This document shows positions 7,270-64,000 of a DNA stretch of 64,000 nucleotides, piece by piece. A model generated the notes under the pieces. That model was not told where the DNA came from. It did no database searches and worked only from the letters and a program-made list of their open reading frames with translations. Made by a program: the position numbers and the translations under genes. Origin of the DNA: Oculina patagonica (taxonomy: Eukaryota); contig NW_027557518.1 of assembly GCF_052425735.1 (NCBI RefSeq), forward strand, positions 1 through 64,000, read 5' to 3'. How positions within the stretch are numbered: the stretch's first letter is position 1; the number at the start of each line of letters is the position of its first letter.

Positions 7270-8199
7270 ATGTCTAACTTCACTACAAATGAAAAAACAC
7301 TCGAAGAATCTGTATGTTATACCAATCCAGACGATAAGCCTGCAGTGATATTTCTTTCAGTATTTAACTTTCTCTTTTCTATCGTCGCTTCCATTGGTAA
7401 TATTTTGATTCTGATTGCGCTTCAAAAGCCGTCGACTTCTCTCCATCCTCCATCGAAAGTTCTGCTACGTTGTCTAGCTTCATCGGATCTCTGTGTTGGC
7501 ATCATTTTACAACCACTGGTTGCCATCGTGTTTGTTTCTGTTGCAAACGAAAATTGGACTCTGTGTGGCCCCATTTTGGGCATAAGCTATGTGCTAGGTG
7601 TAGTTCTGTTCGGGGTGTCTCTGTTGACATTAACGGCCGTGAGTGTGGAAAGGCTTCTTGCTTTGTTGTTAGGGTTACGTTTTCGACAAATTGTAACTGT
7701 TAGGAGAACTGTTGCTATTGCAGTTTGTTTTTGGATCATAAATTTTGCTATCGCTGCCTGGTGTGTTTGGAATTATCTTGTTTTTCTGTGGTACGGATGT
7801 GTGCTGATACTTATATGTGTATTGACCGCTACCTTCTCCTACACCAAGATTTATGCTGATCTTCGCCATCACCAAACAGGAGTGCAAGATCAACCTTTAC
7901 AAGCACAACAAAACCAAGGGGAAACTCCACTGAACATTGCTCGATACAGAAAGACCCTTTCAAGTTCGCTGTGGATACAGTTTACATTACTGGCGTGTTA
8001 CCTTCCTTATTGTGTTGTAACAGCATTAGCAACCTTCACCGGTTTAACGCCGCCTCTTGTCCTAGGCTGGAGATTGACAGCATCTGTTGTCTTCCTCAAC
8101 TCTTCTTTAAACCCTTTCCTTTACTGTTGGAAGATCGCAGAAGTGAGACAAGCGGTGAAAGACACAGTCAAACAACTGTTCTGTTGTTCATCAAGTTAG
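7270..8199 (+). CDS. Class A (rhodopsin-like) GPCR copy 1, intronless, 309 aa, type A; melanocortin/adenosine-receptor-like orphan
   Basis: Seven hydrophobic segments. Motifs: TM1 GN, TM2 LASSD, TM3 ERL (DRY variant), TM4 W, TM6 CYLPY, TM7 NSSLNPFLY, helix 8, C-terminal CC and N-terminal NxT. ECL2 is very short. Confidence 0.96.
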   Translation: MSNFTTNEKTLEESVCYTNPDDKPAVIFLSVFNFLFSIVASIGNILILIALQKPSTSLHPPSKVLLRCLASSDLCVGIILQPLVAIVFVSVANENWTLCGPILGISYVLGVVLFGVSLLTLTAVSVERLLALLLGLRFRQIVTVRRTVAIAVCFWIINFAIAAWCVWNYLVFLWYGCVLILICVLTATFSYTKIYADLRHHQTGVQDQPLQAQQNQGETPLNIARYRKTLSSSLWIQFTLLACYLPYCVVTALATFTGLTPPLVLGWRLTASVVFLNSSLNPFLYCWKIAEVRQAVKDTVKQLFCCSSS

Positions 8200-9617
8200 A
8201 TATCGCAACAATTGACACCGGGACATCCTACAAGTACAATTGTGTTCGAGACGAAGTATTTACATTATAAACACGTTAAATATTTTTCCACTTGGGTGGA
8301 AACTCTGAAATAATACTATGCAGAGAAATAATTTGTGAAATACTGTCGCGTTGGGATCAGGAACGCACTTCAAACAACAACAACAGCAAATCGAATTGCA
8401 TTTGGTTGTAAAGTCTGGCCATGGAAAAAGCTAACAACAATCCTCCATTGCGCGAGTAATCGACAACGGCGATAAGTTTGCGATCCCTTTTCCACGAAAT
8501 ATTTTTAAATTACACTGTGTAAGTAAGGAAAGAGATTTGTTCGTTCTGCGTGCTTTTGAAGAACTGGTAACATTGTATTATAAAGCGACTTAAAAAAGGG
8601 AACAAGTATACTAGTTAAATTCCAGAGAGAATGGACATTCTTGCGTAAAATGCCGGCATTACCCTTTTTACTTTAGAAAATAAAATAAATAAATGCAAAT
8701 CAGCAAGCATTCAATTTAACTGTATGTCACGTCGCAAAATTTTACTTAAAAAATCAAAATCGTTTATTTTGTTAAGTGTCTCATTCTCGGTGCCAGTGAC
8801 TGGAACCGAAAAAATGGAACTCTAGGCTACATCTGTAAGCAATCTCATTGGAAATGATTGTTTTGGTTTTGTAGCAGCGAAACATATCTTAGAATTGAAG
8901 TTTAAAAATGAGATAAAAACTGCTAGAGGATGTTTTCGTATAAGTAATATAAATGCTAATCAGGCTATGTTAAAAGCAGATGATGGTTAAAGAGAGAAGT
9001 GAAGTTTTTAATTAGTACCCTTGACATGCAATTACTAAGAGATCCCATGTTGAGAAAAGGTTTGCCAATAGGATAAGAGATAACTCTGAGGGCAATAAAT
9101 GAACAGGAAATGTTCTAGTCGCCAGCCAATCATATTGTCACTCTCCTACAAAACACATCTCTTATTTAAAATATTTCTGTTAATAAATTTCTTTCTGTTT
9201 ATTCAGGCTATTAGTTAATACTCATGACTTTCTACCTGTTAAAGCAAGGAATAAATATAAACGGTTTAACTAAACGAAGCAGATGTTGTCCCGCTCTTTG
9301 TTCTACCTGTTAAACCAGCCGATGCCTCCAACATGTAAATACTACCTAATATTATCAGAGGCACAAATTTCAAAAGAAAAAGTTGAAAGACATTATTTTC
9401 CAAAAGGAAATAATTCGATGTTGACAAAAATTGAATGAGAAGGTACTAGTTGAAGCATTTGTCATTTTTTTGTTTAAGAGTCTAAAAGGAAAAATCATTA
9501 GTTTTGAATTTTGCTTAATTAACCAAAACTGCCAAAACTAAAATACGAAATCTGTCACAATCTTCACAAATCATGACATCATTTTATGCGTGTCTAATCT
9601 TTATACGGTAATTTCTG

Positions 9618-12174
9618 TCACACAATGTTAACACAATCATTTTGCTCCCTTTCCTTGTCACCATTTCTCAAAAAGCCCGCAGCATTGGCATCTACGTATG
9701 CGCGGTACCCTTCACAGTGATACGCCGAGAACATCCGGGATGTGAAGAACTGATTGGCAGTGCTGTGCTGTGGAAAGACGTTACAACATATCTTGGACAA
9801 CCCCTGGCAAGCTTGTCGGTGACAGCACTCGCAGCAGCAGAGGGTCAACTTATTGACTTCATCTTGTGTGAAAAACACGCCGTCGGGTGCATCGAAAGCA
9901 TGTACATTGGTCGAACGATTTCCATCCATTTCGTCACTGACGCCATGTTGTGGATCTCTTGGTACGATAAGTAGAATTTCTCCTTCGCCTTCTTCACCAA
10001 ATTCATCGCTTTGGTAACGAACCTTGAATCTGAAAAAACAACAAAGGGAGAATTTACAAACGGGATAATTTAAAGACTATATAAATATTCTGTACTATGC
10101 ATTGATTTCGGAAAACATTTAAGCAGGATGGGAGAAAGAAAGCGTGTATTTTATTTGTTTTCTGTTCCATTTTTTTGACTATTTTTCTAAATAGCAAGAC
10201 TTGTGGACAATGAAGAGACTCTCTTACCGAATTCGTGTTAACTCTCAAGGAACTGTTTTAATTTCTCAAGGGAATACTTTTCGCTGTGGGCCATAAAAAC
10301 GTCACTCAATAGGAATGCGTCAGCACTTCCGATCCCGAAGTGTTATCCATTGTTTGTGTTCTGTTTTTTCGATTTGATGCATGTGTTAACTATGGAAAGG
10401 CGATGACCTCAACAAAAGAAAAAGGTACAAGGCGGGGAATTTCGATGGCCCTGTCTGCGTCAGACTACAGTCTATAATTTTTTCCATTTTCACGCGTCGC
10501 TCGTCATCTAGCCTTTGCAAATTAAAGGTAGGTATTTTTCAAAGATCTCTGCGGGGGGAAAGGGGGGGGGGGGCCTTGGGGGGGGCCCCCCATTTATCGA
10601 TTGAATCGCTTAGTTTTACCGTGTCTGTATTTATATGACGTCAAATGATGCAAAATATTAATCTGCATTTCCACAATTTTCCAACGACACATTGCATGGG
10701 AAACATAACTGTGCTATGACGCTGCCATGATCATGGTTGGTTTAGTTATGGTGACGAACCTAGTAAGAATAAATTTTAAAATCATATAATTTTAATTTTG
10801 AGTATTACTTTAACATATACGTAGTACTGTTTATTATACTACACATGGTGGCTGAAATAAGTTGTACTGTCATCTGGTGATGCTGGACAGTGAAATTGTC
10901 GGGCATGAATTGAAATTGAACGGGCATGGACTGAAATTGTCCAACATCCTGATAATATTGTCAAATTTGACCTTTGTACTCTTGGATGTTGAAGCCGGCC
11001 ATTAGGGTATTTCTCGTATGGCAACCTTTAAATCCGTGAGCGTTATTCATGGGGTCCATTTTGCCACGTTTCCTCTAAAACAACCTCCCGTATAAAGCTT
11101 AATTTCAACTTATGCCAGCCTATCTCAATCCGTAAGCTAGTACTTGAAATTGGTTTTATACAAGCGTATTCTTTTACGAGAAGAGCGACGTACCAGATAC
11201 CTGATACCTACCTTACCCTACTATACTACTTTCATTGCAAATAGTGTTAATTGAGACCATAGTTAGAAGAGAGGACTAACTATGCTTAGCAGATGCAAAA
11301 TCGCCTAAGCAAAAAAAAGAAAGAACTACAAACTTGTAATAATGCTGCTTTCCTCCTGTTTTTGGTCTCACAAACTTCTCCAAGAGGTCGAAAATGATGT
11401 CTTGGCCGTCTTCACTTAGAAACGAACAGTTTAGCTTGGTACAAGCAAGCATCAGTGCAATCAAAAAGTTGTCTCCGTAGTATTGGTCGTCATGCTTATA
11501 ACGGCAGCGTCAACAACAACAATCCTTCGTAGCCTTCTCTTTAACAGCGGTAAAATAGCAAGGTTTTCAATATGGCCTCCATCGCTAAGCAGCAGTATTG
11601 GTGGCGGCATTGGGCCAGTGTTTTCATTGGAAAACATTTCTCTCACAAAATAGACGAAAGAAATGTGTACGATAAACCACCTGAATTGACAAAATAGCAA
11701 GAATAACGTATGTTGACTCGTGCTCAGGATTTGCCTTAACAGAATATTTTGCATGTCATGTTGCGTCAATAATCATAGGGTTTTTTAGCGTGAATTCATG
11801 TTAAATGTCTGTTGAGCCAACGTCGTTCCAAGTGCCCCGGGAACCAGATTGCTCTCGAGCTTTAGAACTTAAGAGTGAAATCGAGATTACTCGAGCCTCC
11901 TTGAGGAAAGAAAACTAGTTCGATAAATCGAAAGTGCGGGTATCGGAGGTAAAAGTGCAGTGTTCGCCTTATTGAGAAATTGGTAATACATTATTATTTT
12001 CATTCTAGCCCTTACCTTGCTAATTTCTCCCACCATCTTGGTTGTTCCGCACCAGTGTCGATAAGAACGATGAAAACCAGTACAAGATGTATGGCAAAGA
12101 AGCTTGTTACTCCTATCTTGACGGATTGTTCTGCATCGTGGTAAAGTGCCGGTATAATTATTAATGGAAGGCCA
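9618..12174 (-). pseudogene. 3' remnant of the lipase gene, unit 1: exon 5 intact (9618-10029), exon 4 frameshifted (11334-11680), exon 3 lacking its acceptor (12016-12174)
   Basis: Homologous to lipase A/B exons. Exon 4 is 347 nt instead of 345, a +2 shift at VVDGG that leads to a stop. Exon 3 has a ~35-bp deletion over its acceptor. Exons 1-2 are absent. Confidence 0.88.
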
Positions 12175-13202
12175 TAAAATTGCAAAATAACAGAAATAAG
12201 AAGGTTATGTTATGGAACAACTTTGAGTCATCAGATCAATAATCAGATCAATTAAAAATCTCTAGGAATTTAAATTAGAACAGAGGACTGAACGCGCGCA
12301 TTTGAAGGTACCATTGGCCAAATAGCAGACTAGAGTAGCAAATATTTCTTAGTGTATGATTAATTGTCAGGCTGTCTGGCAACTTTAAAATCTACCCACA
12401 ACCACGCAAACACCCACGTAAGACATATTGGAGCTTATTTTCATGTGCTAACCACGTCCTTTAATTTAGGCATCTCTCATAAAAAAATTACTGCATCGGC
12501 AAGTAACATATTTCAAATATGGATTGTGGTCTATCAAATGAGCCGCATCATAGAGCTGGAGTTTATATTAACTTTCTCCCCTTAGGACTAACAGGATTCT
12601 TCCTGATGGGGTGATAGATGGTTTCCATTGGACCACCCCGAACTTTCGAAACCAAATTGTACGTGTCAGCGTAAAGATTAGTCTGGGGACAGGGTATAAT
12701 ACACAGGCTTATGCCATTAAATATTCGATCACTTCGCACTATCAATGTAATTGAGGCTTGTTTTGCTGCCGGAGTAAGGATGGGGCGGCAAGGGCATGTG
12801 AAGCTTTAGCGTTTTCCTCACAGATTTCGCTCAGTATTATTTTGCAACGAGTTCATTCCATAGCAAGTACAACGGAAAGGACTAGACTATTATTGTTATA
12901 ATGAGATGCAGAAGATATAGCGCTCTTCGTTTGGATTCGTTGTATACAAAGTTTAGCTTTGAAATAAATATGAAGTCAAGAAACGGTGATAAAACGCAGC
13001 CTGCCTTATGGAGGGTTAGCGAACACTTCCACTGACTGGGTCCTCCGGGGTGACCCGTGGAGCTAGGAGTATGGCTCCTATACTAAATTCTGATTGGTCA
13101 TTTCGTAAACTTCATAATTAATGGATTAAAAAACTAAAAATAATTAAGCGCTAACAGAAAAGTAAGCCGACCCGTAATTGTCCAGGTTTATTAGTAAAAA
13201 AG

Positions 13203-14354
13203 GAGTCTGCCTTTTGGTCGAGGGTCGAGGGTCGAGGGTACATTGTCGAGGGTGAGGGTAAAATGTCGAGGGTAGAAAATTTTCACAATTTTCAAAAATT
13301 TACCAACCATTACAATTAATTATAATTGTGGGTAAGATATTCAATAGCACGTAGACATCGCTAGGCGTTTAGTACCCACAGAAGGCCATGTATACACGAA
13401 TAACTACGTGAATAGAAAAGAGCTAGGGTCGAATCCAATTGTCGAGTAAACTCCTTATTTTTTTCTTTCTTGACATAGCCAAGATCCAGATAATGAAATT
13501 TCTCGGGATGAATCACGCGCTAACATTTATTAAATCCGACTTTACTGAAAATGTTCACAAGTCGACCTGTTCAGGTATCACCGTACTGAAAAAGACGGCG
13601 ACTAGTAGATTTACCCACAATTCTCGGCGCACGGAAACTCTTATTCGCTCATAAAAACGCAAAGGAAAAGTCTGAAAACTTAAAACCTGGCATACACAAT
13701 GTTGTTAGTTCATGAAGAATCTTCACCAAGACATGGCTTTTTCTGGTGTCTATTGCCTGTGCTAGGTTCACAAGGAGTTGTGTTGAAATGTACAGTCACC
13801 ACTCACCATCTTTTTTCTGTACGTTGGATTCGAAAGTTAAAACACGACGGTCGAAAGAAAACACATCCATGGTACTAAAGATGAGATGTTCAACATGACA
13901 CGAGCTTGGGACAAAGAAAAATTCTGAGTCCCCGACGGGAATCGAACCCATGGCCTCCCAGATACCGGTTGGGCGCTCTAACCAACTGAGCTACGAGAGA
14001 CTCGTTGTAAGCTGGGCCATGTGACACGCGTCCTGCATACTGCTAGGATCAGCAATGCCGAAATCATCAAGTTTGTAGTAAATAATAAAGATGGTAAATT
14101 TCAAGCTCGGTAATAAATAATAAAGATCTTTATTACCGAGCTTGAAATTTACCATCTTTAGTGATATTAATATTGTTATAGTACTTCCTCACCCGTGATT
14201 AATAATAAATAAATAAATTAATTAATTAATAATTAACTAAATTATCTTTTATTAATATTGGAAATATTGTTACCCTCGACCCTACCCTCGACATGTTACC
14301 CTCACCCTCGACAATGTACCCTCGACCCTCGACCCTCGACCAAAAGGCAGACTC
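13203..14354. mobile_element. Non-autonomous Mutator-like element, 1152 bp, 9-bp TSD GTAAAAAAG
   Basis: ~70-bp TIRs starting GAGTCTGCCTTTTGGTCGAGG, with GTCGAGG repeats. TSD at 13194-13202 and 14355-14363. An empty paralogous site lies at 30248-30256. Confidence 0.9.
13880..14160 (-). mobile_element. tRNA-derived repeat (SINE-like) nested in the MULE; tRNA-like head 13926-14003
   Basis: The minus strand has A box TAGCTCAGTTGG and B box GGTTCGATTCC with cloverleaf-like stems. Further copies lie near 23217-23497 and 36186-36445. Confidence 0.75.
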
Positions 14355-15669
14355 GTAAAAAAGCGGTTAAAGAACAATTGATGACTGACCGCATATAATT
14401 TGTTTCTTCGCCAAAGCAGATAGACGTTTTAATAAAATACCTCCCTTAACAAAATAATATCAGTCTTGCATGGGTTTTTGCCTTATGTTTTCGGTTTTAC
14501 TTAAGCATCGTTTGATGTTTATTTTTACTCGACTGCAATTACTTTTCATCCCTTCATTTACATATTAATTGTAGCAGTCGTATTTCTGTTAGCCTTGTCA
14601 AATTACTCGCAAAGAACTTAAAAGCTATGAAAAAATCATAATCAGCCACAAGGTAATTTTATAAACAGGAAAGATAAAGTTAATTCATACGCGGTTTAAT
14701 ATCTAGCAGTTATTATCTGCCCGTGTGGCAAAGTGTCCACACCAAAGACAGTCACAAGATAAATATGTCAAATCCTAATGGGTCATTATGGAAAACTCAC
14801 AGTTAAAACGTCAGAACTGATTGCTGCAAATTGTTCTCGGGTAAGTTGAAGAGTACAATGTTTACATGGCTTAGCTGTACGTCAACTCACTGCATACAGG
14901 GAATTAAAGCTGATTATACCTGATTATGCAGATACGCAAGCACGTTTTAGGCGGGGTTTTGATATGGGTTTAACAGAATTATCTCGTTCACGTTTCAAGG
15001 AATCCGAAAACGCTTCACTCATCCCATATATCTATGTTTTGCGGTATTTTGTAAACTTTGGGTAATTTTGGGAATTTTGGGGAGGAGATAGTTTTTTCTT
15101 AAAATATTGATTAAATTTAGAGAAATACTTAATATTGGAGATTAAATACCGGTATGTAGTTAAAAATTGATAGACGGATACCAGACAGTCCCACTGACAA
15201 CCTGGAATGCTCTTGCGTAGGGGTCAACTGTCTGGTGATGTTTAATTTTTTTCTTCTTCAATCTCTTCTTTAAACCTCTTGAAACTTTATTCAAATTCAG
15301 GAGGAACCCCACCTTAATATAGGGTATTTTATTATTTTTGTTGTGTTCTTGGGCTTCACTGCAGCTTCATCTTGCTGTGTCATTTAACTTTCCCTGTTCT
15401 TTAACTTCCCGTGTTTTTCAACTTCCTGTGTGTCTTCTGATACAAAGTAAACTTCAAACACGGTCTTCTTGTAGCTTGTCCAGCTGCCTTTCCAATGTGT
15501 CAGTTTCCCTTTTAAATCAAACGATTCCCTTGCACCCAGCTATAATACTGTAATACAACGTTTAAGAAATCTGGCCCGGATACTGCCTCGTCATCTCACT
15601 GGTAACTCGTTAAACCTCCTGTGATGATAAAGCTGGTGCTTTTAAGAGCTGGCCTCTTGTAAAGGAAAG

Positions 15670-15693
15670 ATGTCTAACTCCACTAGAAATTGA
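15670..15693 (+). other. Duplicated start region forming micro-uORF MSNSTRN* (also 25007-25030 and 32080-32103)
   Basis: AAGGAAAG ATG TCT AAC TCC ACT AGA AAT TGA encodes the same first 7 residues as the GPCR that starts 321 bp downstream. Confidence 0.8.
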
Positions 15694-15990
15694 CACAAAA
15701 TAGCCTTCAAACACAGCCTTGTTGCAGCTTGCTCACGGTGATAGGCTGGTTTGAATTTATTCAGTTTAAACTATAATAGACGCCAAGCTGTCTGCTCATG
15801 TATCAGTTTCCTGTCAGGTAAAACAATTCCCTTATCAATATTTCAGTTCTCTCTATGTAAAATGCCACCGACCGGCTATCATGCAGCCTAGACACAGATA
15901 CTGCTTCGGCGAGTTACTGGTGACTCGTTACAAGAAAAGACTTTCTACCATGTCTTACGATGCTTTTATGAGCTAGACTGTCAAGGAAAG

Positions 15991-16920
15991 ATGTCTAACT
16001 CCACTAGAAACAGCCAAACGCTTGAAGAATTCATTTGCTCGACAAATCCAGACAATAAGCCTGCAGTAATATTCCTTTCAGCTTTCAACTTCCTTTTTTC
16101 CATCATTGCTTCCATTGGTAACATTTTGATTCTGACTGCCCTTCAAAAGCCGTCGACTTCTCTCCATCCTCCATCGAAAGTTCTGCTGCGTTGTCTAGCT
16201 ACATCAGATCTCTGTGTTGGCATCATTTTACAACCAATGGTCGCCATCCTGTTTGTCTCTGTTGCAAACGAAAATTGGACTCTGTGTGGCCCCATCTTAG
16301 GCATAAGCTTTCTGTTAGGTGTAGTTCTCTTCGGGGTGTCTCTGTTGACATTAACGGCAGTGAGTGTGGAAAGGCTTCTCGCTTTCTTGTTGGGGTTACG
16401 TTTTCGACAAATTGTAACTGTTAGGAGAACTGTTGCTGTTACAGTTTGTTTTTGGGTCATAAATTTCGTTATCGCCGCGTGGTGTGTTTGGAATTATTTT
16501 GTCTTTCTGTGGTACGGATGTGTGCTGATACTTACATGTGTATTAACCTCTACCTTCACTTACACCAAGATCTATGCCCATCTTCGCCGTCACCAAACAA
16601 GAGTGCAAGACCAATCTTCCCAAACACAACAAAACCAAGGGGAAGTTCCACTGAACATTGCTCGATACAGAAAGACCCTTTCTAGTTCACTGTGGATACA
16701 GTTTACATTACTGGCGTGTTACCTTCCGTATTGTGTTGTAACAGCAATCGCAACCTTCACCGGTTTAACGCCGCCTCTTGTCCTGGGCTGGAGGTTTACA
16801 ACATCTGTTGTATTCCTAAACTCTTCTTTAAACCCTTTCCTTTATTGTTGGAAGATCGCAGAAGTAAGACAAGCGGTGAAAGACACAGTCAAACAACTGT
16901 TCTATTGTTCGTCAAGTTAG
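15991..16920 (+). CDS. Class A GPCR copy 2, 309 aa, type B
   Basis: Same motifs as copy 1. N-terminus MSNSTRNSQT, TM7 RFTTS, C-terminus FYCSSS. Confidence 0.96.
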   Translation: MSNSTRNSQTLEEFICSTNPDNKPAVIFLSAFNFLFSIIASIGNILILTALQKPSTSLHPPSKVLLRCLATSDLCVGIILQPMVAILFVSVANENWTLCGPILGISFLLGVVLFGVSLLTLTAVSVERLLAFLLGLRFRQIVTVRRTVAVTVCFWVINFVIAAWCVWNYFVFLWYGCVLILTCVLTSTFTYTKIYAHLRRHQTRVQDQSSQTQQNQGEVPLNIARYRKTLSSSLWIQFTLLACYLPYCVVTAIATFTGLTPPLVLGWRFTTSVVFLNSSLNPFLYCWKIAEVRQAVKDTVKQLFYCSSS

Positions 16921-18548
16921 ATATCGCAACAATTGACACCGGGAATTCTTCCAAGTACAATTGTGTACGAGAAGAAGTATTTATCTAACCAACACGTTAA
17001 ATATTTTTTCACCTTGGTAGCAACTCTGAAATAATACTTTACAGAGGAATAATTTGTGAAATATTGTCGCACTGGGATCAGGAACCCTCTTCAACCAGCA
17101 ACAACAACAGCAAATGGTATTGCATTTGGTTGGCAAGTCTGGCCATGGGAAAAAGCTGACAACAATCCTCCATTGCGCGCGAGTAATCTACAACGATGAT
17201 AAGTTTTATTTGGATCCCTTTTCCATGAAATAGTTTTAAATTACAATGATCGTCTGTGTATCAAGTGAGGAGACAGCTTTGTTCGTTTTGTTTTTTTGAA
17301 GAACTAGTAACATTGTATTATAAAGCGACTTGTAAAAGGGAACTAGTATACTAGTTTAATTCCGGAGAGAATCGACATTCTTGGGCTAAATGCTGCCATT
17401 ATTCTCTATACTTTAGTTAATAAAATAAAGAAATGCAAATCAGCTTGCATTAAATTTAAATGTATGTCACGTCGCAAAATTTCACTTAAAAATCGTTTTT
17501 TTTTATATGACTCATTGAGAATATGGAACTCTAGGTTACATCTGTAAGCAATATCATAGGCCAAATGTTTACTATTTCTGATATTCTTGGTTTTCTAGCA
17601 GCGAAACATATGTGAGAATTGAAATTTAAAAATGAGATAAAATCTGATAGAGGATGTTTTCATATTAGTAATATAAATGCTAATCAGACTATGTTAAAAG
17701 CAGATGATGGTTCAAAGAAAAAATACACTTTTTAATAAGGACCCTTCTTAACAGTAAATTGACATGCAATACTAAGAGATCCCATGTTAATAAAAGGTTT
17801 ACCAATAAGATTAGAGATTACTCTGAAAAAGAATCACTGTACAGGAAATGTTCTAGTCGCCAGCCAATCATATTTTTGCTCTCTTCCAAAACACGTCTCT
17901 AATTTAAAATATTTCTTTTACTGATTTTTCTATCTGTTTATTCAGGCTATTAGTTAATAGTCATGATTTTCTACTTGTAAAAGCATGGAATAGATATGAA
18001 CGGTTTTACTAAACGAAGCAGATGTTCTCCCGCTCTTTGTTCTACTTGTAAAACCAGCAGATGCCTCCAACATGTAAATACTACCTAATAATATTATCAG
18101 CGGCATACATGTCAAGAGAAAAAGTTGAAAGACATTATTTTCCAAAAGGAAATAATTCGATGTTGATAAAAATGGAATGAGATCTAGAAGGTACATGTTG
18201 AAACATTTGTCATTTTTTTTGTTTAAGATTCTAAAATTAAAAATCCTTAATTTTGAATCTTGCTTAACCAAAACTACCAAAACTAAAATACGAAAAAAGG
18301 ACGACTAAAAGTACCTTCAGAGAAAACTATATAATCAATATTTGAAAAATATTCAAAGGTGCAACGCCTGGGATAGCGTTAACTGAACATTTTAGCAACA
18401 TTTTTCCAGTACGCCTTTCCCAATCTGTCAAAATCTTCACGAATCTTGACCATCTTAAGCTTGGCTCTTTGCTTTGTCATGAAACATTTAGCAAGTTTTG
18501 CAAACGACATCATTTTATGCGCCTCTAATCTTTATACGGTAATTTCTG

Positions 18549-21511
18549 TCACACAATGTTAACATTATCATTTTGCTCCCTTTCCTTGTCACCATTTCTC
18601 AAAAAGCCAACAGCATTGGCATCTACGCATGCGCCGTACCCTTCACAGTGATACGCCGAGAACATCTTGGATGTGAAGAACTGATTGGCAGTGCTGTGCT
18701 GTGGAAAGACGTTACAACATATCTTGGACAACCCCTGACAAGCTTGTCGGTGACAGCACTCGCAGCAACAGAGAGTCAAGTTATTGACTTCATCTTGTGT
18801 GAAAAACACACCGTCGGGTGCATCGAAAGGATGCAAATTAGTCGAACGATTTCCATCCATTCCGTCATTTACGCCATGCTGCGGATTTCTTGGTACGATA
18901 AGTAGAATTTCTCCTTCGCCTTCTTCACCGAATTCATCGCTTTGGTAACGAACCTTGAATCTGAAAAAGCAACAAAAGGAGAATTTACAACCGGGATAAT
19001 TTCAAGGCTATTTAAATATTCTGTACTCTGCATTGATATCGGAGAACATTTAAGCAGGATGAAGAGAAAGAAAGCGTGCGTTTTACTTGTTTCTGCTCCT
19101 TTTTTTCGACTATTTTGCTTGTTAAAGTAAAATAGTAAGACTTGTGGACAATGAAGTCACTCTCTTACCGAATTCTTGGTAACTCTCAAGGAACTGTTTT
19201 AATTTCTCAAGGGAATACTTTTCGCTGTGGGTGATAAAAACGTCACTCAAGAGGAATGCGTCAGCACTTCCGATCCCGAATTGTTACAAGGCGGGCAATT
19301 TCGATGGCCTTGTCCGTGTCGAGACTACAGTCTATTTTTTTTTTCCATTTTCACGCGTCGCTCGTCATCTAGCCTTGCAAATTAAAGGTTGGTATTTTTC
19401 AAAGATCTCTGCCATTCATCGATTGAATCGCTTAGTTTTATCATGCCTGTGTTTATATGACGTTAAATGATGCAAAATATTAATATGCATTTCCACAATT
19501 TTCCAGCGACACATTGCATGGGAAACATAACTGTGCTATGACGCTACCATGATAATGGTTGGTTTAGTTATGGTGACGAACCTAGTAAGAATAAATTTTA
19601 AAATCATATACAGTCGAAGCTCTCTTAACGGACACTCTCGTAAGCGGACAGCTCTACTTACGGCCACCTTGTTAGAAACCCCGTTTTTACTCCCATACAA
19701 ACTCTGTATTTTTACATTCTCGTAAGCGGACATTCCCGTAAGCGGCCGCGGACACTTTCCGAGATTACGACTTAGACTTTTTCTTTGTTTTTAAGCTCCC
19801 GTAAGCGGACACCGCAAAGAAAATCATATAAAAAACCTCTGTATCTTGTATTAATCAATCAACTTCACATCGCCGTTTGTCACAATGATTTTACTGTAAT
19901 TACAGTACCATATTTCAGTGTTTGTTTTGTCGTCATCCACGTCCGGTTACATTTCGAAACATGCATATTACCATTATGTTAGCTGGGCAAGCTCCCGTAA
20001 GCGGCCATCTATCCCCTACACCTCTAGTGGCCGCTTACAAGAATTATTCTCGTAAGCGGCCAGCTCCAATTGCGGACACTTTTTTCGCGTCCCGAGGGTG
20101 TCCGCTTATGAGAGCTTCGACTGTAATTTTAATTTTGAGTATTACTTTAACATATACGTAGTACTGTTTATTATACTACACATGGTGGCTGAAATAAGTT
20201 GTACTGTCATCTGGTGAAGCTGGACAGTGAAATTGTCGGGCACGAATTGAAATTGAACGGGCATGGACTGAAATTGTCCAACATCCTGATAATATTGTCA
20301 AATTTGACCTTTGTACTCTTGGATGTTGAAGCCGGCCATTAGGGTATTTCTCGTATGGCAACCTTTAAATCCGTGAGCGTTATTCATGGGGTCCATTTTG
20401 CCACGTTTCCTCTAAAACAACCTCCCGTATAAAGCTAAATTACAACTTATGCCAGCCTATCTCAATCCGTAAGCTAGTACTTGAAATTGGTTTTATACAA
20501 GCGTATTCTTTTACGAGAAGAGCGACGTACCAGATACCTGATACCTACCTTACCCTACTATACTACTTTCATTTCAAGTAGTGCTACTTGAGACCATAGT
20601 TAGAAGAGAGGACTAACTATGTTTAGCAGATGCAAAATCGCCAAAGCAAAAAGAGAAAGAACAACAAACTTGTAATAACGCTGCTTTCCTCCTGTTTTTG
20701 GTCTCACAAACTTCTCCAAGAGGTCGAAAAATGATGTCTTGGCCGTCTTCACTTAGAAACGAACAGTTTAGCTTGGTACAAGCAAGCATCAGTGCAATCA
20801 AAAAGTTGTCTCCGTAGTATTGGTCGTCATGCTTATAACGGCAGCGTCAACAACAACAATCCTTCGTAGCCTTCTCTTTAACAGCGGTAAAATAGCAAGG
20901 TTTTCAATATGGCCTCCATCGCTAAGCAGCAGTATTGGTGGCGGCATTGGGCCAGTGTTTTCATTGGAAAACATTTGTCTCACAAAATAGACGAAAGGAA
21001 TGTGTACGATAAACCACCTGAATTGACAAAATAGCGAGAATAACGTATGTTGACTCGTGCTCAGGATTTGCCTTAACAGAATATTTTGCATGTCATGTTG
21101 CGTCAATCATCATAGGGTTTTTTAGCGTGAATTCATGTTAAATGTCTGTTGAGCCAACGTCGTTCCAAGTGCCCCGGGAACCAGATTGCTCTCGAGCTTT
21201 AGAACTTAAGAGTGAAATCGAGATTACTCGAGCCTCCTTGAGGAAAGAAAACTAGTTCGATAAATCGAAAGTGCGGGTATCGGAGGTAAAAGTGCAGTGT
21301 TCGCCTTATTGAGAAATTGGTAATACATTATTATTTTCATTCTAGCCCTTACCTTGCTAATTTCTCCCACCATCTTGGTTGTTCCGCACCAGTGTCGATA
21401 AGAGCGATGAAAACCAGTACAAGATGTATGGCAAAGAAGCTTGTTACTCCTATCTTGACGGATTGTTCTGCATCGTGGTAAAGTGCCGGTATAATTATTA
21501 ATGGAAGGCCA
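18549..21511 (-). pseudogene. 3' remnant of the lipase gene, unit 2: exon 5 intact (18549-18960), exon 4 disrupted (20670-21017), exon 3 truncated (21353-21511)
   Basis: Same lesions as unit 1, plus one extra +1 nt downstream of the premature stop. Confidence 0.88.
19611..20123. mobile_element. Tc1/mariner-type MITE, 513 bp, TA TSD
   Basis: TIRs CAGTCGAAGCTCTC / GAGAGCTTCGACTG flanked by TA, with repeated CGTAAGCGG motifs. Empty site at 10787-10788. Confidence 0.92.
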
Positions 21512-27909: not shown

Positions 27910-28012
27910 TTAATTAACCAAAACTGCCAAAACTAAAATACGAAATCTATCACAATCTTCACAAATCATGACATCATTTTATGCGTGTCTAATCTTTATA
28001 CCGTAAATTCTA

Positions 28013-28436
28013 TCACACAATGCTAACATAATCATTTTGCTCCCTTTCTCTGTCACCATTTCTCAAAAAGCCCGCAGCATTGGCATCTACGCATGCTCTG
28101 TACCCTTCACAGTGATACGCTGAGAACATCCGGAATGTGAAGAACTGATTGGCAGTGCAGTGCTGTGGAAAGACGTTACAACATATCTTGGACAACCCCT
28201 GACAAACTTGTCGATGACAGCACTCGCAGCAACAGAGAGTCAAGTTATTGACTTCATCTTGTGTGAAAAACACACCGTCGGGTGCATCGAAAGGATGTAC
28301 ATTGGTTAAACGTTTTCCATCCATTTCGTCGCTGACGCCATGTTGCGGATCTCTTGGTACGATAAGTAGCTGGATAAGTAGAATTTCTCCTTCGCCTTCT
28401 TCACCAAATTCATCGCTTTGGTAACGAACCTTGAAT
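28013..28436 (-). pseudogene. Orphan last exon (exon 5) of the lipase gene, unit 3; frame intact
   Basis: Acceptor TTTCAG is intact and there is an in-frame 12-nt duplication (LLIQLLIV). Exons 3-4 were removed by a ~1.3-kb deletion with its junction near 29563. Confidence 0.85.
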
Positions 28437-50881: not shown

Positions 50882-50930
<49 letters not shown>

Positions 50931-53900
50931 CATTCATTCATTGTTTGATTGATAGGAAGTTATTGCGTACGCTCTTTGGCCCCGTCACGCATTCGTCTCC
51001 CAATAACCTTACCTCATGAGCATAGTTACTTACCTCAAAACATCGACCTTTCTTTTTGCAGATGGAGACTTCAGAGAGCGTTTTATCACCGCGAGGGAGT
51101 GGGACCAAAAGGATGTGCAGGGATCGGGTTACAGGACACCTTTGCTCTGTGGACATGTCTATCGTCGACAAACCAAGGGATTCCAGAGGAGGAGAAACCC
51201 TTGACACTTGCAGATCTGAAAGGCATGAAGCCTGAATACTTGGCCAACATTGTGGTCAATCGCTGGAAGAAAAGCAAATTGTCCCAGCACAGCTATGAGC
51301 TTCTGACAATGTCTCCTACAGGAATTGAGCGTATAGATCGCGACCCAAACAACAAACAGTTTAAAGGCAAACTGGAACCGGAGGATGTGAAGTTATCAGA
51401 TGCTATGGCCACCTCGGCGGCGGCGCTTTCTACTCACATGGGCAAATATGATTACACGGTTAAAGGGCTGACTCGTCTCCATACGATTCTTGGACTCGAA
51501 ATGGGTGCCACCACGATAAGCGACATTAAATCAGTGAGAAGGGAAAGTTGCACATTGAGGGTATGTTAGCCTGCTTAACGTATGTAATACGCACTAGTTC
51601 TTCCCACGGGCGAGCGGGTTGCGTGTCCATTAAATGTTATTCGGTAATTAACGCCATGAAATTTCGTGCCAAATCCGGTTAGCGAAAATGGAAAGACAGG
51701 TCGACATTTGGTCCTACACAGAGCTTTTAACATTAATAAAGTTTTAACAAGCCAAGCTCTATCAAAGAGAGAGTACAACTTTTCCTGGAAATACTTTACT
51801 TGCAGGATTGTATTTTTGCTGCCGGGGTTAGATGCTAAAAGGACGTGCCTAGAACATGGACATAGTTACTTTGTATTTAGATTTATCGGTCCATATATAT
51901 TAAAGATGCAAAAGAGACCTTACTTATTGTCATACATTAGGAAATATGTTCAGCTCTAGACAGCATTTAGTCCACAAAACCCTCATATGCTTTGCTTCCA
52001 GCTCTAAGCTGTTTTCGTTTTAATTTCTAGAGTAATTGGTACCCAGCCTGATAATTCTAAGTTGTTCCATGATTAATCATTCTATTTCTTTTAATTGCTA
52101 ATTCACAGATATTCCTTCCATGTGTTGTGGATGTTCTGCGTTGTCTGCCATTAATAGTTGTACCGGCCCTTTACCATGGTTCAGAACCATCCGTTAAAAT
52201 AGGAGTAATAATCTTCTTCGCTGTACATCTTGCACTGGTCTTCATCGCCCTCATTGACACAGGAGCGGAACAACCAGGATTGTTGGAGAAAGTAGCCAGG
52301 TAAGGGTAAAATAAAAACAATTACTGTAATCACGATTTCTCGCGCCCTCGAGTTTTCGAACCTGCTGATAATTTGAAAAAAAAAGTTTCCCTTGGATTTG
52401 CTTCAATAAGTCCCCGGGGGGGGGGGGGGGAGTACTTGCAGTATACATGACGGGGGAGTCCGACGGAGCTTTATATTGCGAACCCAAAAAAATACCTGAC
52501 ATCAAAATTTTCTACCCCAAAAAGTATAAGACCTAGCACCTCTATACTAATTTATTCAATAAAACAGACTTTAAGATCTAAAAAAATATATGAAAGATTT
52601 CTTGACCCAAAAAAATACCGAGGGTGTAAATTTTCAACCGAAAAAATACGTCGGACCTTCCCGTCATGTATACTGCAAGTACCCTCCCCCCCCCCCCCCC
52701 TGGGAATAAGTCAAACACTGCAATTCTTCCTCCGATTTCTCGAATCAATTTTCGGTTTTCTTGGAGGTTTGAGAAATAGGGACTTCACTCTAAAGCACTA
52801 AAACGAATGCACATTGAGAAACAAACATCTATTGTACCTGCCTGTCACGCCCTCAGTCCCTCCCCTGCTCGAGAGCAACTTCGTTTCCAGGGTACCTTAG
52901 TCTAATCCCTGAACTCTTCTTCCCCGCCTTATAAAGGGGTTAAACCCACCTGATTTCAACCTCTATAGAGACTATATAGGGCGGGAAAGGAACAGGGACT
53001 GGACTACGGGGTCATAGGAACGAGGTTGGCTCAAACGACAGATTCGCGCGGAAAAATTCCACACTGGTAAAGAAAAACGACATGTGCACTACACTATTAT
53101 GGGTCAAAATAAGTTATTCGTGTATTTTATTTTTTTAGGTGGTTTATCGTACACATTTCTTTCGTCTACTTTGTGAGAGAAATGTTTTCCAAGGAAAACA
53201 CTGGCCCAATGCCGCCACCTATACTGCTTCTTAGCGATGGAGGCCATATTGAAAACCTTGCTATTTTACCGCTGTTAAAGAGAAGGCTTCGAAGGATGGT
53301 TGTTGTTGATGGTGGTTATAAGCATGACGACCAATACTACGGAGACAGCCTTTTGAATGCACTGATGCTTGCTCGTACCAAGCTTAACTGTTCTTTTATA
53401 AGTGAAGACGGCCAAGACGTTATTTCCGACCTCTTGGAGACGTTTGTGAGACCAAAGACAGGAGAAAAGTCACATTATTATAAGTTTGTAGTTCTTTTCT
53501 TTGCTTGGGTGATTTTACAGTCTATACAACATCTCAAGTATAATTATTTAAATGAGAAATTGAAAGTAGTATTAAGGTGTACGGTAGGTACAAGGATTCT
53601 GAAACTGTCGCACCTCTTTTCTGATGATACACTTCTATGAGACTAATTTCATGTTCCCGCTCAGGGTTTGGGGATAGGGTGGTACGGGATGGAATATAGA
53701 AGAAATGCCAAAATGGACCCCAAGAAATTAAAGGTTGCCACGCCCGTTTACGAGAAGTATCCGCGTGGCTAAATGGAGTTTACAGGCTACAATCACCAGA
53801 AAATATCAACCTACAGTTAGGGAGATTATCCACTTATAGAAAGTATCCTACTTAAACTCTATGTACAGGCACTAAACCCGGCTTCAACTTCCAAGACTGA

Positions 53901-54649
53901 CTAAGGTCTCTTGACAGAATTCTGTTTTCTATGATTTTTGTTCAATGAACCGGTGGGAAAATGTTGAAACGAAAATTACAATTTTGCACTATATGACCCC
54001 ATTCGTTGAAAAAAAAATAATATTTCCGGGTGAGGCTCAACGAGATTTAATACTTAACAGTACAGGCAGCAGCAATGGGATGTAGAAAGCTGGAAAAGAA
54101 AACAAGTAACATACACGTTTTCTTTGCTTGCCAACCAGCTTAAATGCTCTCCGATATAACTGCAGAGTACCAATAATTTTGGTCTTAAAACTAAACCCTT
54201 GTTAATGTTCCTTTTGTTGCTATTTCAGATTCAAGGTTCGTTACCAAAGCGATGAATTTGGTGAAGAAGGCGAAGGAGAAATTCTACTTATCGTACCAAG
54301 AGATCCGCAACGTCACGGTGGCGTCGGTGACAGAATGGATGGAAATCGTTCGACCAATTTGTATCCTTTCGACGCACCCGACGGCGTGTTTTTCACACAA
54401 GATGACGTCAATAACTTGACTCTCTGTTGCTGCGAGTGCTGTCACCGACAAGCTTGCCAGGGGTTGTCCAAGATATGTTGTAACGTCTTTCCTCAGCACA
54501 GCACTGCCAATCAGTTCTTCACATCCCGGATGTTCTCGGCGTATCACTGTGAGGGCTACTGTGCATGCGTAGATGCCAATGCTGTTGCCTTTATAAAAGA
54601 TGGTGAAAGAGAAGAGGAGCAAAATTATTATGTTAATATTAATGTGTGA
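49057..54649 (+). CDS. Lipase B: multi-pass membrane patatin/cPLA2-like phospholipase, 814 aa; join(49057..50045,51062..51560,52109..52299,53139..53483,54229..54649)
   Basis: GT-AG introns with phases 2,0,2,2 and a 2445-nt open frame. Same catalytic motifs and intron positions as lipase A. Confidence 0.92.
50848..50940 (+). repeat. (GATT)n microsatellite
   Basis: About 20 imperfect GATT units. Confidence 0.95.
52413..52704. mobile_element. MITE, 292 bp, 8-bp TSD AATAAGTC
   Basis: TIR CCCG(n)AGTACTTGCAGTATACATGACGGG. Exact TSD at 52405-52412 and 52705-52712. Confidence 0.9.
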
Positions 54650-56556: not shown

Positions 56557-56673
56557 TTTATTACAACGCTAATTGTAAGAACATGTAAAAAACATGTCAA
56601 ATGTATTAACCACTTTTACAGTTTCTTTCTTTGTAAAAAACATGTAAATGTCTTTACTAAATCATGTAAAGAA

Positions 56674-59682: not shown

Positions 59683-60612
59683 ATGTCTAACTTCACTAGA
59701 AATGAAAAAACCCTTGAAGAATCTGTATGTTCTACAAATCCAGACGATAAGCCTGCAGTGATATTTCTTTCAGCATTCAACTTCCTTTTTTCTATCGTTG
59801 CTTCCATTGGCAATATTTTGATTCTGATTGCCCTTCAAAAGCCGTCGACTTCTCTCCATCCTCCATCGAAAGTTCTGCTACGTTGTCTAGCTACATCGGA
59901 TCTCTGTGTTGGCATCATTTTACAACCACTGGTTGCCATCGTGTTTGTTTCTGTTGCAAACGAAAATTGGACTCTGTGTGGCCCCATCTTGGGCATAAGC
60001 TATCTGCTAGGTGTAGTTCTTTTCGGGGTCTCTCTGTTGACATTAACGGCAGTGAGTGTCGAAAGGCTTCTCGCTTTGTTGTTGGGGTTACGTTTTCGAC
60101 AGGTTGTAACTGTTAGGAGAACTGTTGCTGTTACAGTTTGTTTTTGGGTCATAAATTTTGCTATCGCTGCCTGGTGTGTTTGGAATTATCTTGTCTTTCT
60201 GTGGTACGGATGTGTGCTGATACTTATATGTGTATTGACCGCTACCTTCACTTACACCAAAATTTATGCCGATCTTCGCCATCACCAAACAGGAGTGCAA
60301 GATCAACCTTTCCAAGCACAACAAAACCAAGGTGAAACTCCACTGAACATTGCTCGATACAGAAAGACCCTTTCTAGTTCGCTGTGGATACAGTTTACAT
60401 TACTGGCGTGTTACCTTCCGTATTGTGTTGTAACAGCATTAGCAACCTTCACCGGTTTAACGCCGCCTCTTGTCCTAGGCTGGAGATTGACAGCATCTGT
60501 TGTCTTCCTCAACTCGTCATTAAACCCTTTCCTTTACTGTTGGAAGATCGCAGAAGTGAGACAAGCGGTGAAAGACACAGTCAAACAACTGCTCTGTTTT
60601 TCGTCAAGTTAG
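59683..60612 (+). CDS. Class A GPCR copy 5, 309 aa, type A
   Basis: Same motifs. Its upstream region (from ~57960) is homologous to that of copy 1 (from ~5570). Confidence 0.96.
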   Translation: MSNFTRNEKTLEESVCSTNPDDKPAVIFLSAFNFLFSIVASIGNILILIALQKPSTSLHPPSKVLLRCLATSDLCVGIILQPLVAIVFVSVANENWTLCGPILGISYLLGVVLFGVSLLTLTAVSVERLLALLLGLRFRQVVTVRRTVAVTVCFWVINFAIAAWCVWNYLVFLWYGCVLILICVLTATFTYTKIYADLRHHQTGVQDQPFQAQQNQGETPLNIARYRKTLSSSLWIQFTLLACYLPYCVVTALATFTGLTPPLVLGWRLTASVVFLNSSLNPFLYCWKIAEVRQAVKDTVKQLLCFSSS

Positions 60613-62234
60613 ATATCGCAACAATTGACATCGGAAGATCTTCCAAGTACAATTGTGTACGAGAAGAAGTATTTACATGATAAACACGTTAAATATTTTA
60701 CCACTTCGGTGCAAACTCTGAAATAATACTATGCAGAGGAATAATTTTCGAAAAACTGTCGCGTTGGGATCAGGTACGCACTTCAACCAGCAACAACACT
60801 GACAACAGCAAATGAAATGTATTTGGTTGGGAGGTCTGGACATGGGAAAAAGCTAACAACAATCCTCCATTGCGCGCGAGTAATCTACAACGGCTATAAG
60901 TTTTATTTGGATCCCTTTTCCATGAAATAGTTTTAAATTACAATGATCGTCTGTGTAAGTAACGAAACAGCTTTGTTCGTTTTGTGTTCTTTTGAAGAAC
61001 TCAGATTAACATGGTTTTATAAAGCGACTTGTAAAAGGGAACTAGTATACTAGTTTAATTCCGGAGAGAATCGACATTCTTGGGCTAAATGCTGCCATTA
61101 TTCTCTATACTTTAGTTAATAAAATAAAGAAATGCAAATCAGCTTGCATTAAATTTAAATGTATGTCACGTCGCAAAATTTCACTTAAAAATCGTTTTTT
61201 TTTTATACGACTCATTGAGAATATGGAACTCTAGGTTACATCTGTAAGCAATATCATAGGCCAAATGTTTACTATTTCTGATATTCTTGGTTTTCTAGCA
61301 GCGAAACATACGTGAGAATTGAAATTTAAAAATGAGATAAAATCTGATAGAGGATGTTTTCATATTAGTAATATAAATGCTAATCAGACTATGTTAAAAG
61401 CAGATGATGGTTCAAAGAAAAGTAAACTTTTTAATAAGGACCCTTCATGACAGTAAATTGACATGCAATACTAAGAGATCCCATGTTGAGAAAAGGTTTA
61501 CCAATAAGATAAGAGAAAACTCTGAGATGAAATAACTGAACAGGAAATTTTCTAGTCACCAGCCAATCATATTGTTGCTCTCGTCCAAAACACATCTCTA
61601 ATTTTAAATATTTCTGTTACTAATTTTTTCCCCGTGTTTATTCAGGCTATTAGTTTTTTGTCCTAATTTTCTACCTGCAAAAGGATGGAATTAATATGAA
61701 CGGTTTTACTAAACGAAGCAGATGTTTTCCCGCTCTTTGCTCTACCTGTTAAACTGGCAGATGCTTCCAACATGTAAATACTACCTAATATTATCAGAGG
61801 CATATATGTCAAAAGAAAAAGATGAAGGGCATTATGTTTCAAAAGGGAATAATTCGACAAAAATTGAATGAGAGCGTACTAGTTGAAATATTTGTTTTTT
61901 GTTTAAAATCAAAAATTAAAAACCCTTAGTTTTGAATTTTGCTTAACCAAAAATGCCAAAACTAAGAAAAGAAAAATAGGGACGACTAAAAGTACCTTCA
62001 GAAAAAACTATATAATCATTATTTGAAAAATATTCAAAGGCGCATCGCCTTTAATAGCGTAAACTGGAACTTTGGCCGCATTTTTCCAAACCGTCCTTCC
62101 CAATGTGTCACAATCTTCACGAATCTTGACCATCTTTAGCCTGCTACTCTTTGCTAAATTTGTCATAAAACACTTAGCAAGGTTTGCAAACGACATCATT
62201 TTATGCGCGTCTAATCTTTATACGGTAAATACTG

Positions 62235-63902
62235 TCACACAATGTTAACATAATCATTTTGCTCCCTTTCCCTGTCACCATTTCTCAAAAAGCCCGCAGC
62301 ATTGGCATCCAAGCATGCGCGGTAGCCTTCATAGTGATACGCCGAGAACATCCGGGATGTGAAAAATTGATTGGCAGTGCTGTGCTGTGGAAAGACGTTA
62401 CAACATATCTTGGACAAGCCCTGACAACTTTGTCGATGACAGCACTCGCAGCAGCAGAGGGTCAATTTATTGACTTCAGCTTGTGTGAAAAACACGCCGT
62501 CGGGTGCGTCGAGCTTAATCGAACGGTTTCCATCCATTTCGTCCATGACGGCATGTTGCGGATCTCTTGGTACGATAAGTAGAATTTCTCCTTCGCCTTC
62601 TTCACCGAATTCATCGCTTTGGTAACGAACCTTGAATCTGAAAAAGCAACAAGGGAGCATTGACAAACGGGATGATTTTAAGACTAAAATTATTCTGTAC
62701 TCTACATTGCTATGGTAGAGCATCTAAACTGGTTCGCGTGAAAGGAAGTGTGCGTGATACTTATTGAGCTTCACCCAGGAACAAATTTTCTTTACAAATG
62801 GGGTCAAATAACCCAAAACGTAATTTGCCTTTAATCAATTTTCCACCGGCTTATTGCATAGAAATTAGAAATGTGCCATGAGACCACTGTGATTGGTTAT
62901 TATTTTAAAATTAAAACATGAATTAAACAAAATAGTTTGCACAGCTACGGTGACAAACCTGGGAAAAAAAATTCAAAATCATACAATTCACTTAGCTACC
63001 AACAGGCATGCCATGGACATAGCTAGCGCACGATTTAATGAAACCTATTGAGCGGTTTATGTGACATTGGAAGTTTTATTTTTGTGCTGTACAGGGTGGT
63101 TGTAATTTCAGGTCAGTGTGTCACCATTCAAATGATAGATATTGAGCAGTATCTTCATGTTTATTATACTGTACAAGGTGTCTTAGTCACTGGAGATACC
63201 CTAGTGTTTGACCATTCAAATGAAAGCTAATAATCAGTACTGTCAACTGATGAAGTTGGAAGATGAAATTTAGCCCTGAGGGAACCTCTTGTAAACAGAC
63301 GTGGCAACCCTTATTTTCCCGGGGGGGTCCATTTCGGCACGTTTTTCTCAAAAAACACTCCCATTAGCCGTATTATACCCCTGCTACGCTATTCCTAACC
63401 CATAAGCGGGTACTTCAAATTTTTCTTTTACGTGAGATGCGACAGTACCAAAAACCTCCTCTTAATTTACCCCCTAATACTACTTTCAGTTTTTATATAT
63501 AAGTAATCATATTTGAGACGTTGCAAAGTCACCCAAGCGAAGAAAATAACTACAAACTTGTAATAACGCGGCTTTCCTCGCGCCTTTGGTCTCACAAACT
63601 TTTCCAGAAGGTCGAAAATAACGTCTTGGCCGTCTTCACTTAGAAACGAACAGTTAAGCTTGGTACGAGCAAGCATCAGTGCATTCAGAAGGTCGTCTCC
63701 ATAGTATTGGTCGTCATGCTTATAACCGCCATCAACAACAACAATCCTTCGTAGCCTTCTCTTCAACAGCGGTAAAATAGCAAGGTTTTCAATATGGCCT
63801 CCATCGCTAAGAAGCAGTACAGCTGGCGGCATTGGGCCAGTGTTTTCCTTGGAAAACATTTCTCTCACGAAATAGACGAAAGAAACGTGTACGATAAACC
63901 AC
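62235..63902 (-). CDS. Lipase C, last two exons (62235..62637, 63558..63902); 5' part presumably beyond the window
   Basis: Both exons are open with canonical splice sites. Exon 4 is the normal 345 nt with LSDGGHIENL and VVDGG intact. Confidence 0.85.
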
Positions 63903-64000
63903 CTGAAAATAAAATAGCAAGAGCAACCTTTGTTGACTTATGATCAGGGTTCATTTCATGTCTCGTCATCAGTTCGAAAGTTTTCGGTTCGAATCTTTCT

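Follow-up and report, generated by a model that had tools for sequence, protein, structure and literature searches.

Interleaved copies of a class A receptor gene and a putative membrane-lipase gene in a tandem array of the coral Oculina patagonica

When copies of two unrelated genes stand side by side again and again, has selection held a working pair together, or has duplication carried neighbours along? This question is raised by a 64,000-nucleotide stretch of the genome of the coral Oculina patagonica (contig NW_027557518.1, positions 1 to 64,000; hereafter the window), in which five intact genes for G protein-coupled receptors (GPCRs) each lie tail-to-tail with a copy or a remnant of the same patatin/cPLA2-like gene, here called the lipase. 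An earlier reading of this DNA (the original prediction) had proposed that the enzyme generates a lipid ligand for the receptor and that the two were kept and expanded together, with the caveat that the linkage could be a passenger effect of duplication. Our analysis favours the caveat. The array probably descends from an ancestral pair of neighbours that underwent lineage-specific tandem and inverted duplication, their co-amplification being a passenger effect of adjacency; the partners are retained independently of each other and amplify independently, which makes this the better explanation.

Structure and duplication history of the array

Contig C560, of which the window covers the first 64 kb, is 118 kb long and unplaced in a genome of 529 Mb. 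Its layout was described correctly in the original prediction: the distances from the GPCR stop codon to the stop codon of the lipase last exon are 1418, 1628, 1755, 1632, and 1622 bp for GPCR1 to GPCR5 (~1.4-1.8 kb predicted), and of the two full enzymes and the probable third that had been proposed, copies A and B are complete in the window and copy C is completed just outside it (Table 1). Two further intact copies, D and E, follow along the same contig beyond the window. Over 100 kb, C560 carries five intact GPCRs and five intact lipases, which form only two intact pairs (GPCR4 with copy A and GPCR5 with copy C). The other three of the five GPCRs (GPCR1 to GPCR3) are paired only with dead 3' lipase fragments, and three of the five lipases (B, D, and E) have no GPCR. 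Copy B is arranged head-to-head with copy A and has no GPCR at its tail; no GPCR remnant was found behind it by tblastn (E < 1e-5), and its homology to the other units ends ~140 bp past the stop codon.

The closest protein matches of the window genes were annotated Oculina patagonica proteins (98% and 90% identity) encoded on the 29.98-Mb contig C3. On this contig the array spans ~220 kb, and the window contig carries near-identical copies of parts of it. The tally on C3 was ~10 intact and 7 broken GPCRs, 17 lipase last exons, and 8 lipase first exons. Nearly every GPCR there is followed at 1.2-2.0 kb by a lipase last exon, only ~2 intact GPCRs face a lipase that has exon 1, and several exon-1-bearing lipase copies face no GPCR or a broken one.

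The units of the array are segmental duplicates that are 85-96% identical. The five adjacencies therefore count as one observation in this genome, being neither chance nor five independent events. Within the genome, members of the GPCR subfamily (at least 80% identity) occur only in this array, and the phylogenetic tree placed all Oculina GPCR copies in one clade within a well-supported orthogroup of 25 sequences.

The two partners have not diverged in step. Between units 2 and 4 and between units 3 and 4, identity is 98-100% over the GPCR and ~0.8 kb on each side of it, versus 76-89% over the lipase remnant. Similarly, the synonymous divergence (dS) of GPCR2 and GPCR4 is 0.007, and that of the adjoining lipase last exons is 0.19. 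These sequence comparisons suggest that gene conversion or very recent copying acts on the GPCR alone.

The history that we infer would have started from one convergent pair, consisting of an intronless orphan class A GPCR and a five-exon membrane-lipase gene. Unequal crossing-over with breakpoints inside the lipase would have copied the GPCR with only the 3' exons of its neighbour, yielding intact receptors with dead lipase tails, and other events would have duplicated the lipase alone or inverted it. Later gene conversion would then have homogenised the GPCR genes and their flanks and left the lipase part untouched. Functional coupling of the two genes is probably absent.

Linkage was scored at eight orthologous GPCR loci in other coral assemblies. 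A convergent pair was found at three of them, so the linkage is not limited to Oculina patagonica. At locus L001, a GPCR with 81% identity lies 1.5 kb from a complete lipase; at L024, a GPCR with 83% identity lies 3 kb from a complete lipase; and at L028, a GPCR with 67% identity (dS ~1.05) lies 6.5 kb from lipase exons 5 to 3, which run up to the end of the locus. The basal split of the GPCR orthogroup passes between these three loci, so the linkage is ancestral. The species represented by L001 and L034 has a single pair within ~30 kb, which makes the amplification a feature of the Oculina lineage alone. At the remaining five loci (L002, L025, L026, L027, and L003), no lipase exon was found within 10 kb of the GPCR, L002 having been followed for 18.6 kb downstream. 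The Nematostella lipase homologue adjoins an arginyl-tRNA synthetase gene and has no GPCR neighbour. Synteny across cnidarians is thus mixed, the pair being present at 3/8 orthologous loci but absent at 5/8 and beside the Nematostella homologue. At two of the loci (L003:12973-15380 and L026:4413-7496), the orthologous GPCR is flanked by mobile-element genes in place of the lipase, encoding a DDE transposase and a YqaJ-type exonuclease in one and a reverse transcriptase and an endonuclease in the other.

Elsewhere in the Oculina genome, none of ten lipase paralogue loci has a related GPCR beside it. One of the ten has a 25%-identical GPCR 4.5 kb away, which is about what chance would give in a 529-Mb genome that holds more than 3500 GPCR candidates. 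In this genome, each of the two families tends to undergo tandem amplification on its own, so their co-amplification is no evidence that the lipase makes the ligand of the receptor. The physical co-duplication of enzyme and receptor is real, but the claim that they were kept and expanded together is not supported: the partners were not co-retained, each family amplifies alone elsewhere, the linkage was lost in several coral lineages, and the receptor is not specifically close to lysolipid or endocannabinoid receptors (see below).

Duplication of this kind is pervasive in corals: tandem duplicates make up ~1/3 of their genes, and rhodopsin-like GPCRs are the domain most often amplified (Noel et al. 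2023, Genome Biol, PMC10236652). As in the coral tandem arrays defined in that study, the paralogues described here lie on one contig, are monophyletic, and show a spread of Ks. The locus shares with the rhodopsin-like GPCR orthogroups of those arrays the lineage-specific amplification, confined to a genus or species, of intronless class A GPCRs over a range of ages (here dS 0.007-0.26). It differs from them in that a second, unrelated multi-exon gene is interleaved and was copied whole or in part, with truncated remnants and some inverted units. Vertebrate chemoreceptor and taste-receptor arrays offer a functional analogy only; they too are species-specific tandem arrays of intronless GPCRs that include pseudogenes and undergo gene conversion, whereas the coral array lacks evidence of sensory expression or positive selection.

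The receptor and the lipase

The five intronless GPCRs are 88-98% identical to each other and match the Pfam family 7tm_1 (PF00001) with 74.1 bits (cut-off, 30.5). The AlphaFold model (pLDDT confidence score 82.5) has seven helices at residues 20-51, 60-92, 96-141, 144-165, 169-209, 219-257, and 261-288, followed by helix 8 at 290-308. Transmembrane helix (TM) 7 contains the NPxxY motif as NPFLY, and the DRY motif at the end of TM3 is a variant, E-R-L. The original prediction had noted a very short second extracellular loop (ECL2) and a proline-free TM5, and both features were found: all three extracellular loops are ~3 residues long in the model, with ECL2 at 166-168, and TM5 (169-209) contains no proline. 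Melanocortin receptors have a minimal ECL2 and a proline-free TM5. However, the two features make for a resemblance to melanocortin receptors only, and they would fit any other minimal-loop receptor as well.

The further placement of the GPCR in the melanocortin/EDG/cannabinoid branch did not hold up. Among the best 60 PDB sequences, the nearest solved receptors were TAAR7f, adenosine A2A and A3, beta-adrenergic, and 5-HT1A receptors (E-values 1e-12 to 1e-7, or 1e-12 to 1e-9 with 5-HT1A set aside), and no sphingosine-1-phosphate (S1P), lysophosphatidic acid (LPA), other lysolipid, cannabinoid, or melanocortin receptor was present. In the fold search, A2A, beta-1, CB1, D2, TAAR1, and MC4R tied within ~20-fold in E-value. 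CB1 ranked 10th and MC4R 36th among the top 50 fold matches, tied with amine receptors, and no S1P or LPA receptor was among these 50. We tried to assign a ligand class by sequence and by fold, and neither discriminates within the alpha group.

With the alpha-group class A receptors (adenosine, trace-amine, adrenergic, melanocortin, and cannabinoid receptors), the coral GPCR has in common seven helices plus helix 8, the NPxxY motif, the DRY motif in its E-R-L variant, and its best sequence and fold matches. It differs in being only 17-21% identical to any solved receptor and in its extracellular loops, all of about three residues. Orthology to any bilaterian receptor type could not be demonstrated. 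Judged by sequence and model, it is best classed as an alpha-group class A GPCR in the broad sense, and nothing points to a lipid ligand.

The ratio of nonsynonymous to synonymous substitution rates (dN/dS) was 0.11-0.25 for every pair of GPCR copies except the near-identical GPCR2 and GPCR4, which differ at 8 sites. Against orthologues it was 0.15-0.29 (codon alignment). The GPCR copies are thus under purifying selection and are working genes.

The lipase gene was modelled with a full-length Montipora homologue as guide and has five coding exons with GT-AG junctions throughout. Copy A has an oxyanion motif, GGGIRS, at residues 10-15, a putative nucleophile Ser40 in V-S-G-G-G, and Asp593 in S-D-G-G-H, in agreement with the residue numbering given in the original prediction. 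The first Gly of the GxSxG motif is replaced by Cys (C-V-S40-G-G). In 14 distant homologues, the columns of the Ser and the Asp vary little or not at all. About eight hydrophobic helices lie in the ~550 residues between Ser40 and Asp593 of copy A, and the C-terminal exon is Cys-rich.

Exon 1 scored 27.6 bits (copy A) and 27.1 bits (copy B) against the Pfam Patatin family (PF01734), for which the cut-off is 27.7, and the homologue P0140 reached 34.1 bits. The scores of the two copies thus lie just under the cut-off; the domain is split by the membrane insert. The fold comparison was made on a model of the Montipora homologue P0122 (exon 1 52% identical), standing in for the window lipase. Foldseek matched this model to cPLA2 with an E-value of only 3e-3, and a second fold comparison settled the match, with Z scores of 18.8 for cPLA2-alpha, 18.2 for PlpD, 17.6 for cPLA2-delta, and 13.8 for patatin. 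The gene product is accordingly described here as a membrane-embedded, putative Ser-Asp enzyme of the patatin/cPLA2 fold. It shares with this superfamily (cPLA2-alpha 1CJY, PlpD 5FYA, cPLA2-delta 5IZR, patatin 4PKA, iPLA2-beta 6AUN, and CBASS CapV/CapE) the GGGIRS motif, the nucleophile Ser, the Asp of S-D-G-G-H, and, for the P0122 model, the fold, which matches in both halves of the catalytic domain (Z 13-19). The ~550-residue membrane insert, the Cys-rich C-terminal exon, the Cys in GxSxG, and the lack of a C2 domain set the coral lipase apart.

Uncharacterised homologues of the lipase occur in cnidarians (corals including Montipora, the sea anemone Nematostella, and the jellyfish Sanderia), a calcareous sponge (Sycon), and an amoebozoan (Planoprotostelium). 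None of the subfamily members among the homologues found carries a functional name, and a literature search returned nothing relevant on patatin-like lipases of corals or on lysolipid receptors of cnidarians. The Oculina genome has at least 40 copies of the first exon, with separate arrays on contigs C5, C13, C8, and C11; the expansion is large, uncharacterised, and lineage-level. These arrays lie at C5:26.00-26.60 Mb, C13:3.84-3.99 Mb, C8:9.7-12.1 Mb, and C11:3.2 Mb, and their copies are often head-to-head or tail-to-tail. Three copies of lipase exon 1 are 100% identical, two of them 61 kb apart on C3 (C3:25261301 and C3:25322349) and one on the window contig (C560:44658), suggesting that a stretch of 60 kb was duplicated very recently or that haplotypes were left uncollapsed.

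Evidence of transcription came from Logan contigs of runs whose RNA type is a program's guess; such contigs give no levels, strands, or co-expression. A spliced 837-nt contig from run X4 joins exons 3, 4, and 5 of copy A, with junctions that deviate from the predicted ones by a few bases at most. Contigs in runs X1 and X2 end at the ends of lipase exons, and in X1 and X4 the depth over the intron between exons 4 and 5 is zero. The spliced contig and several exon-bounded ones support the RNA type of the runs, and the lipase is therefore both transcribed and spliced. Contig coverage of GPCR4 in run X1 suggests that the GPCR is transcribed too.

Other features of the window

The coordinates of the genes and of the other features are collected in Table 1. 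Intron 2 of copy A is 6.5 kb long and contains an inverted-repeat insertion, whereas that of copy B is 0.5 kb long. The insertion probably represents a transposon flanked by long terminal inverted repeats, or else an inverted duplication; those of its inner open reading frames that were tested had no Pfam match. Intron 3 of copy A carries a repeat with a tRNA-like core. At 36100-36500 and 37100-37500, contigs cover repeat sequence to a depth of 10^4-10^5 in each of the four runs compared, and the intron 3 repeat is probably a very abundant tRNA-derived short interspersed element (SINE) of this coral group.

Table 1. Features of the window, with positions counted from its first nucleotide
Feature	Positions	Strand	Description
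GPCR1	7270..8199	+	Intact, intronless, 309-aa class A GPCR; dN/dS against other copies 0.15-0.24
GPCR2	15991..16920	+	Intact, 309 codons
GPCR3	25328..26257	+	Intact, 309 codons
GPCR4	32401..33330	+	Intact, 309 codons; covered by run X1 contigs at 99.5% identity
GPCR5	59683..60612	+	Intact, 309 codons
Lipase remnant 1	9618..12174	-	Exon 5 open, 9618-10029; exon 4 frameshifted, 11334-11680; partial exon 3, 12016-12174; exons 1 and 2 absent
Lipase remnant 2	18549..21511	-	Exon 5 open, 18549-18960; exon 4, 20670-21017; partial exon 3, 21353-21511
Lipase remnant 3	28013..28436	-	Exon 5 only
Lipase copy A	34963..45647	-	810 aa; exons 45647-44659, 44172-43674, 37206-37016, 36051-35707, 35371-34963
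Lipase copy B	49057..54649	+	814 aa, intact; exons 49057-50045, 51062-51560, 52109-52299, 53139-53483, 54229-54649
Lipase copy C	62235..64000 in window	-	Exon 5, 62235-62637; exon 4, 63558-63902; exons 3-1 at contig positions 64405-68179; intact, 804 aa
tRNA-like core of SINE-type repeat	36242-36304	-	Intron 3 of copy A; Rfam tRNA, 33.5 bits
Inverted repeat pair	37479-38322 and 42402-43253		96.6% identical; brackets ~4 kb inside intron 2 of copy A
Tandem repeat	56663-57063		44-bp unit, 9 copies, 91% matches; in unique stretch between copy B and the GPCR5 unit
Youngest large tandem duplicate	10787..27577		10787-18267 matches 20124-27577 at 96.1%; 7.5 kb, period ~9.3 kb

Competing explanations and implications

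Several observations weigh against a history of duplication and decay without coupling. Both genes are under purifying selection (dN/dS 0.27-0.33 among lipase copies A-E, codon alignment), and RNA-type contigs cover both. The convergent pair is older than the species, occurring in three other coral assemblies with one pair per locus, and selection on the pair could be the reason why the two genes stayed adjacent across such a divergence. In addition, the orphan last exons of remnants 1 to 3 are still open, with 136-140 codons and a mutual dN/dS of 0.25-0.31, which pure decay does not predict. The simplest cause of these open frames is conversion by intact copies; other possible causes are that the decay is recent or that the Cys-rich C-terminal exon has a use of its own. 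It should be noted that remnants 1 and 2 have a common frameshift in exon 4 that is older than their split, with a second one in remnant 2.

The open last exons bear also on a regulatory explanation, in which the two genes have no ligand relation and instead belong to a common chromatin domain or are tied by 3' elements or convergent transcription, the last-exon remnants acting on the GPCR either through an antisense transcript or as an element downstream of it. Besides the openness and low dN/dS of these exons in spite of the loss of the upstream ones, this would account for the very constant stop-to-stop spacing (1.62-1.64 kb for most units, both in the window and on C3) and for the lipase last exon kept behind nearly every GPCR copy, intact or broken. 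However, the constraint on the remnants is at the protein level (synonymous exceeding nonsynonymous change), which fits gene conversion better than a DNA element. A constant spacing is expected anyway among young duplicates, and in other species it varies from 1.5 to 6.5 kb. Moreover, the contigs of run X1 leave 33.7-34.1 kb uncovered, between GPCR4 and copy A, and no overlapping GPCR and lipase transcripts were seen in them. We regard a shared regulatory neighbourhood as very unlikely.

Also very unlikely is the functional module of the original prediction, in which the membrane lipase would release a fatty acid or lysolipid that activates the adjoining GPCR in an autocrine or paracrine manner, selection holding and amplifying both genes together. 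Such a module would be consistent with the linked pairs that span the base of the GPCR orthogroup, with the duplication of at least one complete pair as a unit (GPCR4 with A, GPCR5 with C), and with the constraint and RNA-type contig coverage of both genes. The predicted fold and the Ser-Asp dyad are those of lipid-releasing enzymes, as the Z scores for cPLA2-alpha and PlpD indicate for the model, and the receptor has a three-residue ECL2, a proline-free TM5, and CB1 and MC4R among its fold matches. However, the uneven survival of the partners (three of five on either side left without a working counterpart), the apparent treatment of the GPCR as a separate unit by gene conversion, the lack of a related GPCR at all ten other lipase paralogues examined, and the missing linkage at 5/8 orthologous loci and in Nematostella all argue against it. 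Amine and adenosine receptors top the sequence search and the alpha-group receptors tie in the fold search, and GPCRs are so numerous that one beside any gene is unremarkable. All that speaks positively for the module is an adjacency that is old and in part conserved, and ordinary microsynteny accounts for that as well. A variant, in which the pair is a lipid-signalling unit of robust corals that Oculina multiplied, with surplus partners decaying as one lipase serves many receptors, appears just as improbable. If the two genes were coupled, the locus would deorphanise one of thousands of cnidarian GPCRs and offer a rare animal case of a ligand-making enzyme clustered with its receptor.

An assembly artefact, with uncollapsed haplotypes or mis-joined reads in the place of real paralogues, is hardly credible: the window contig is unplaced, its genes have 100%-identical counterparts on C3, where two first exons are identical as well, and the genome-wide copy count may be partly inflated, but units in one contig differ by 4-15% with distinct indels, transposon insertions, and breakpoints, several variants were seen in independent sequencing runs, and alleles would not stand in tandem on one contig, so that the divergence and the differing breakpoints rule out an assembly artefact as the cause of the repeats in the window.

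Passenger duplication of ancestral neighbours remains the explanation that we favour, and on this reading the locus is a well-resolved example of how coral tandem arrays grow: breakpoints that fall in a neighbour gene leave truncated copies, units are inverted, and conversion is limited to one partner. It also carries a warning that repeated adjacency inside a duplication array is a single observation. The more unusual object may be the lipase family itself, with no characterised member in any organism, 40 or more copies in this coral, and about eight membrane helices that interrupt its predicted patatin fold.

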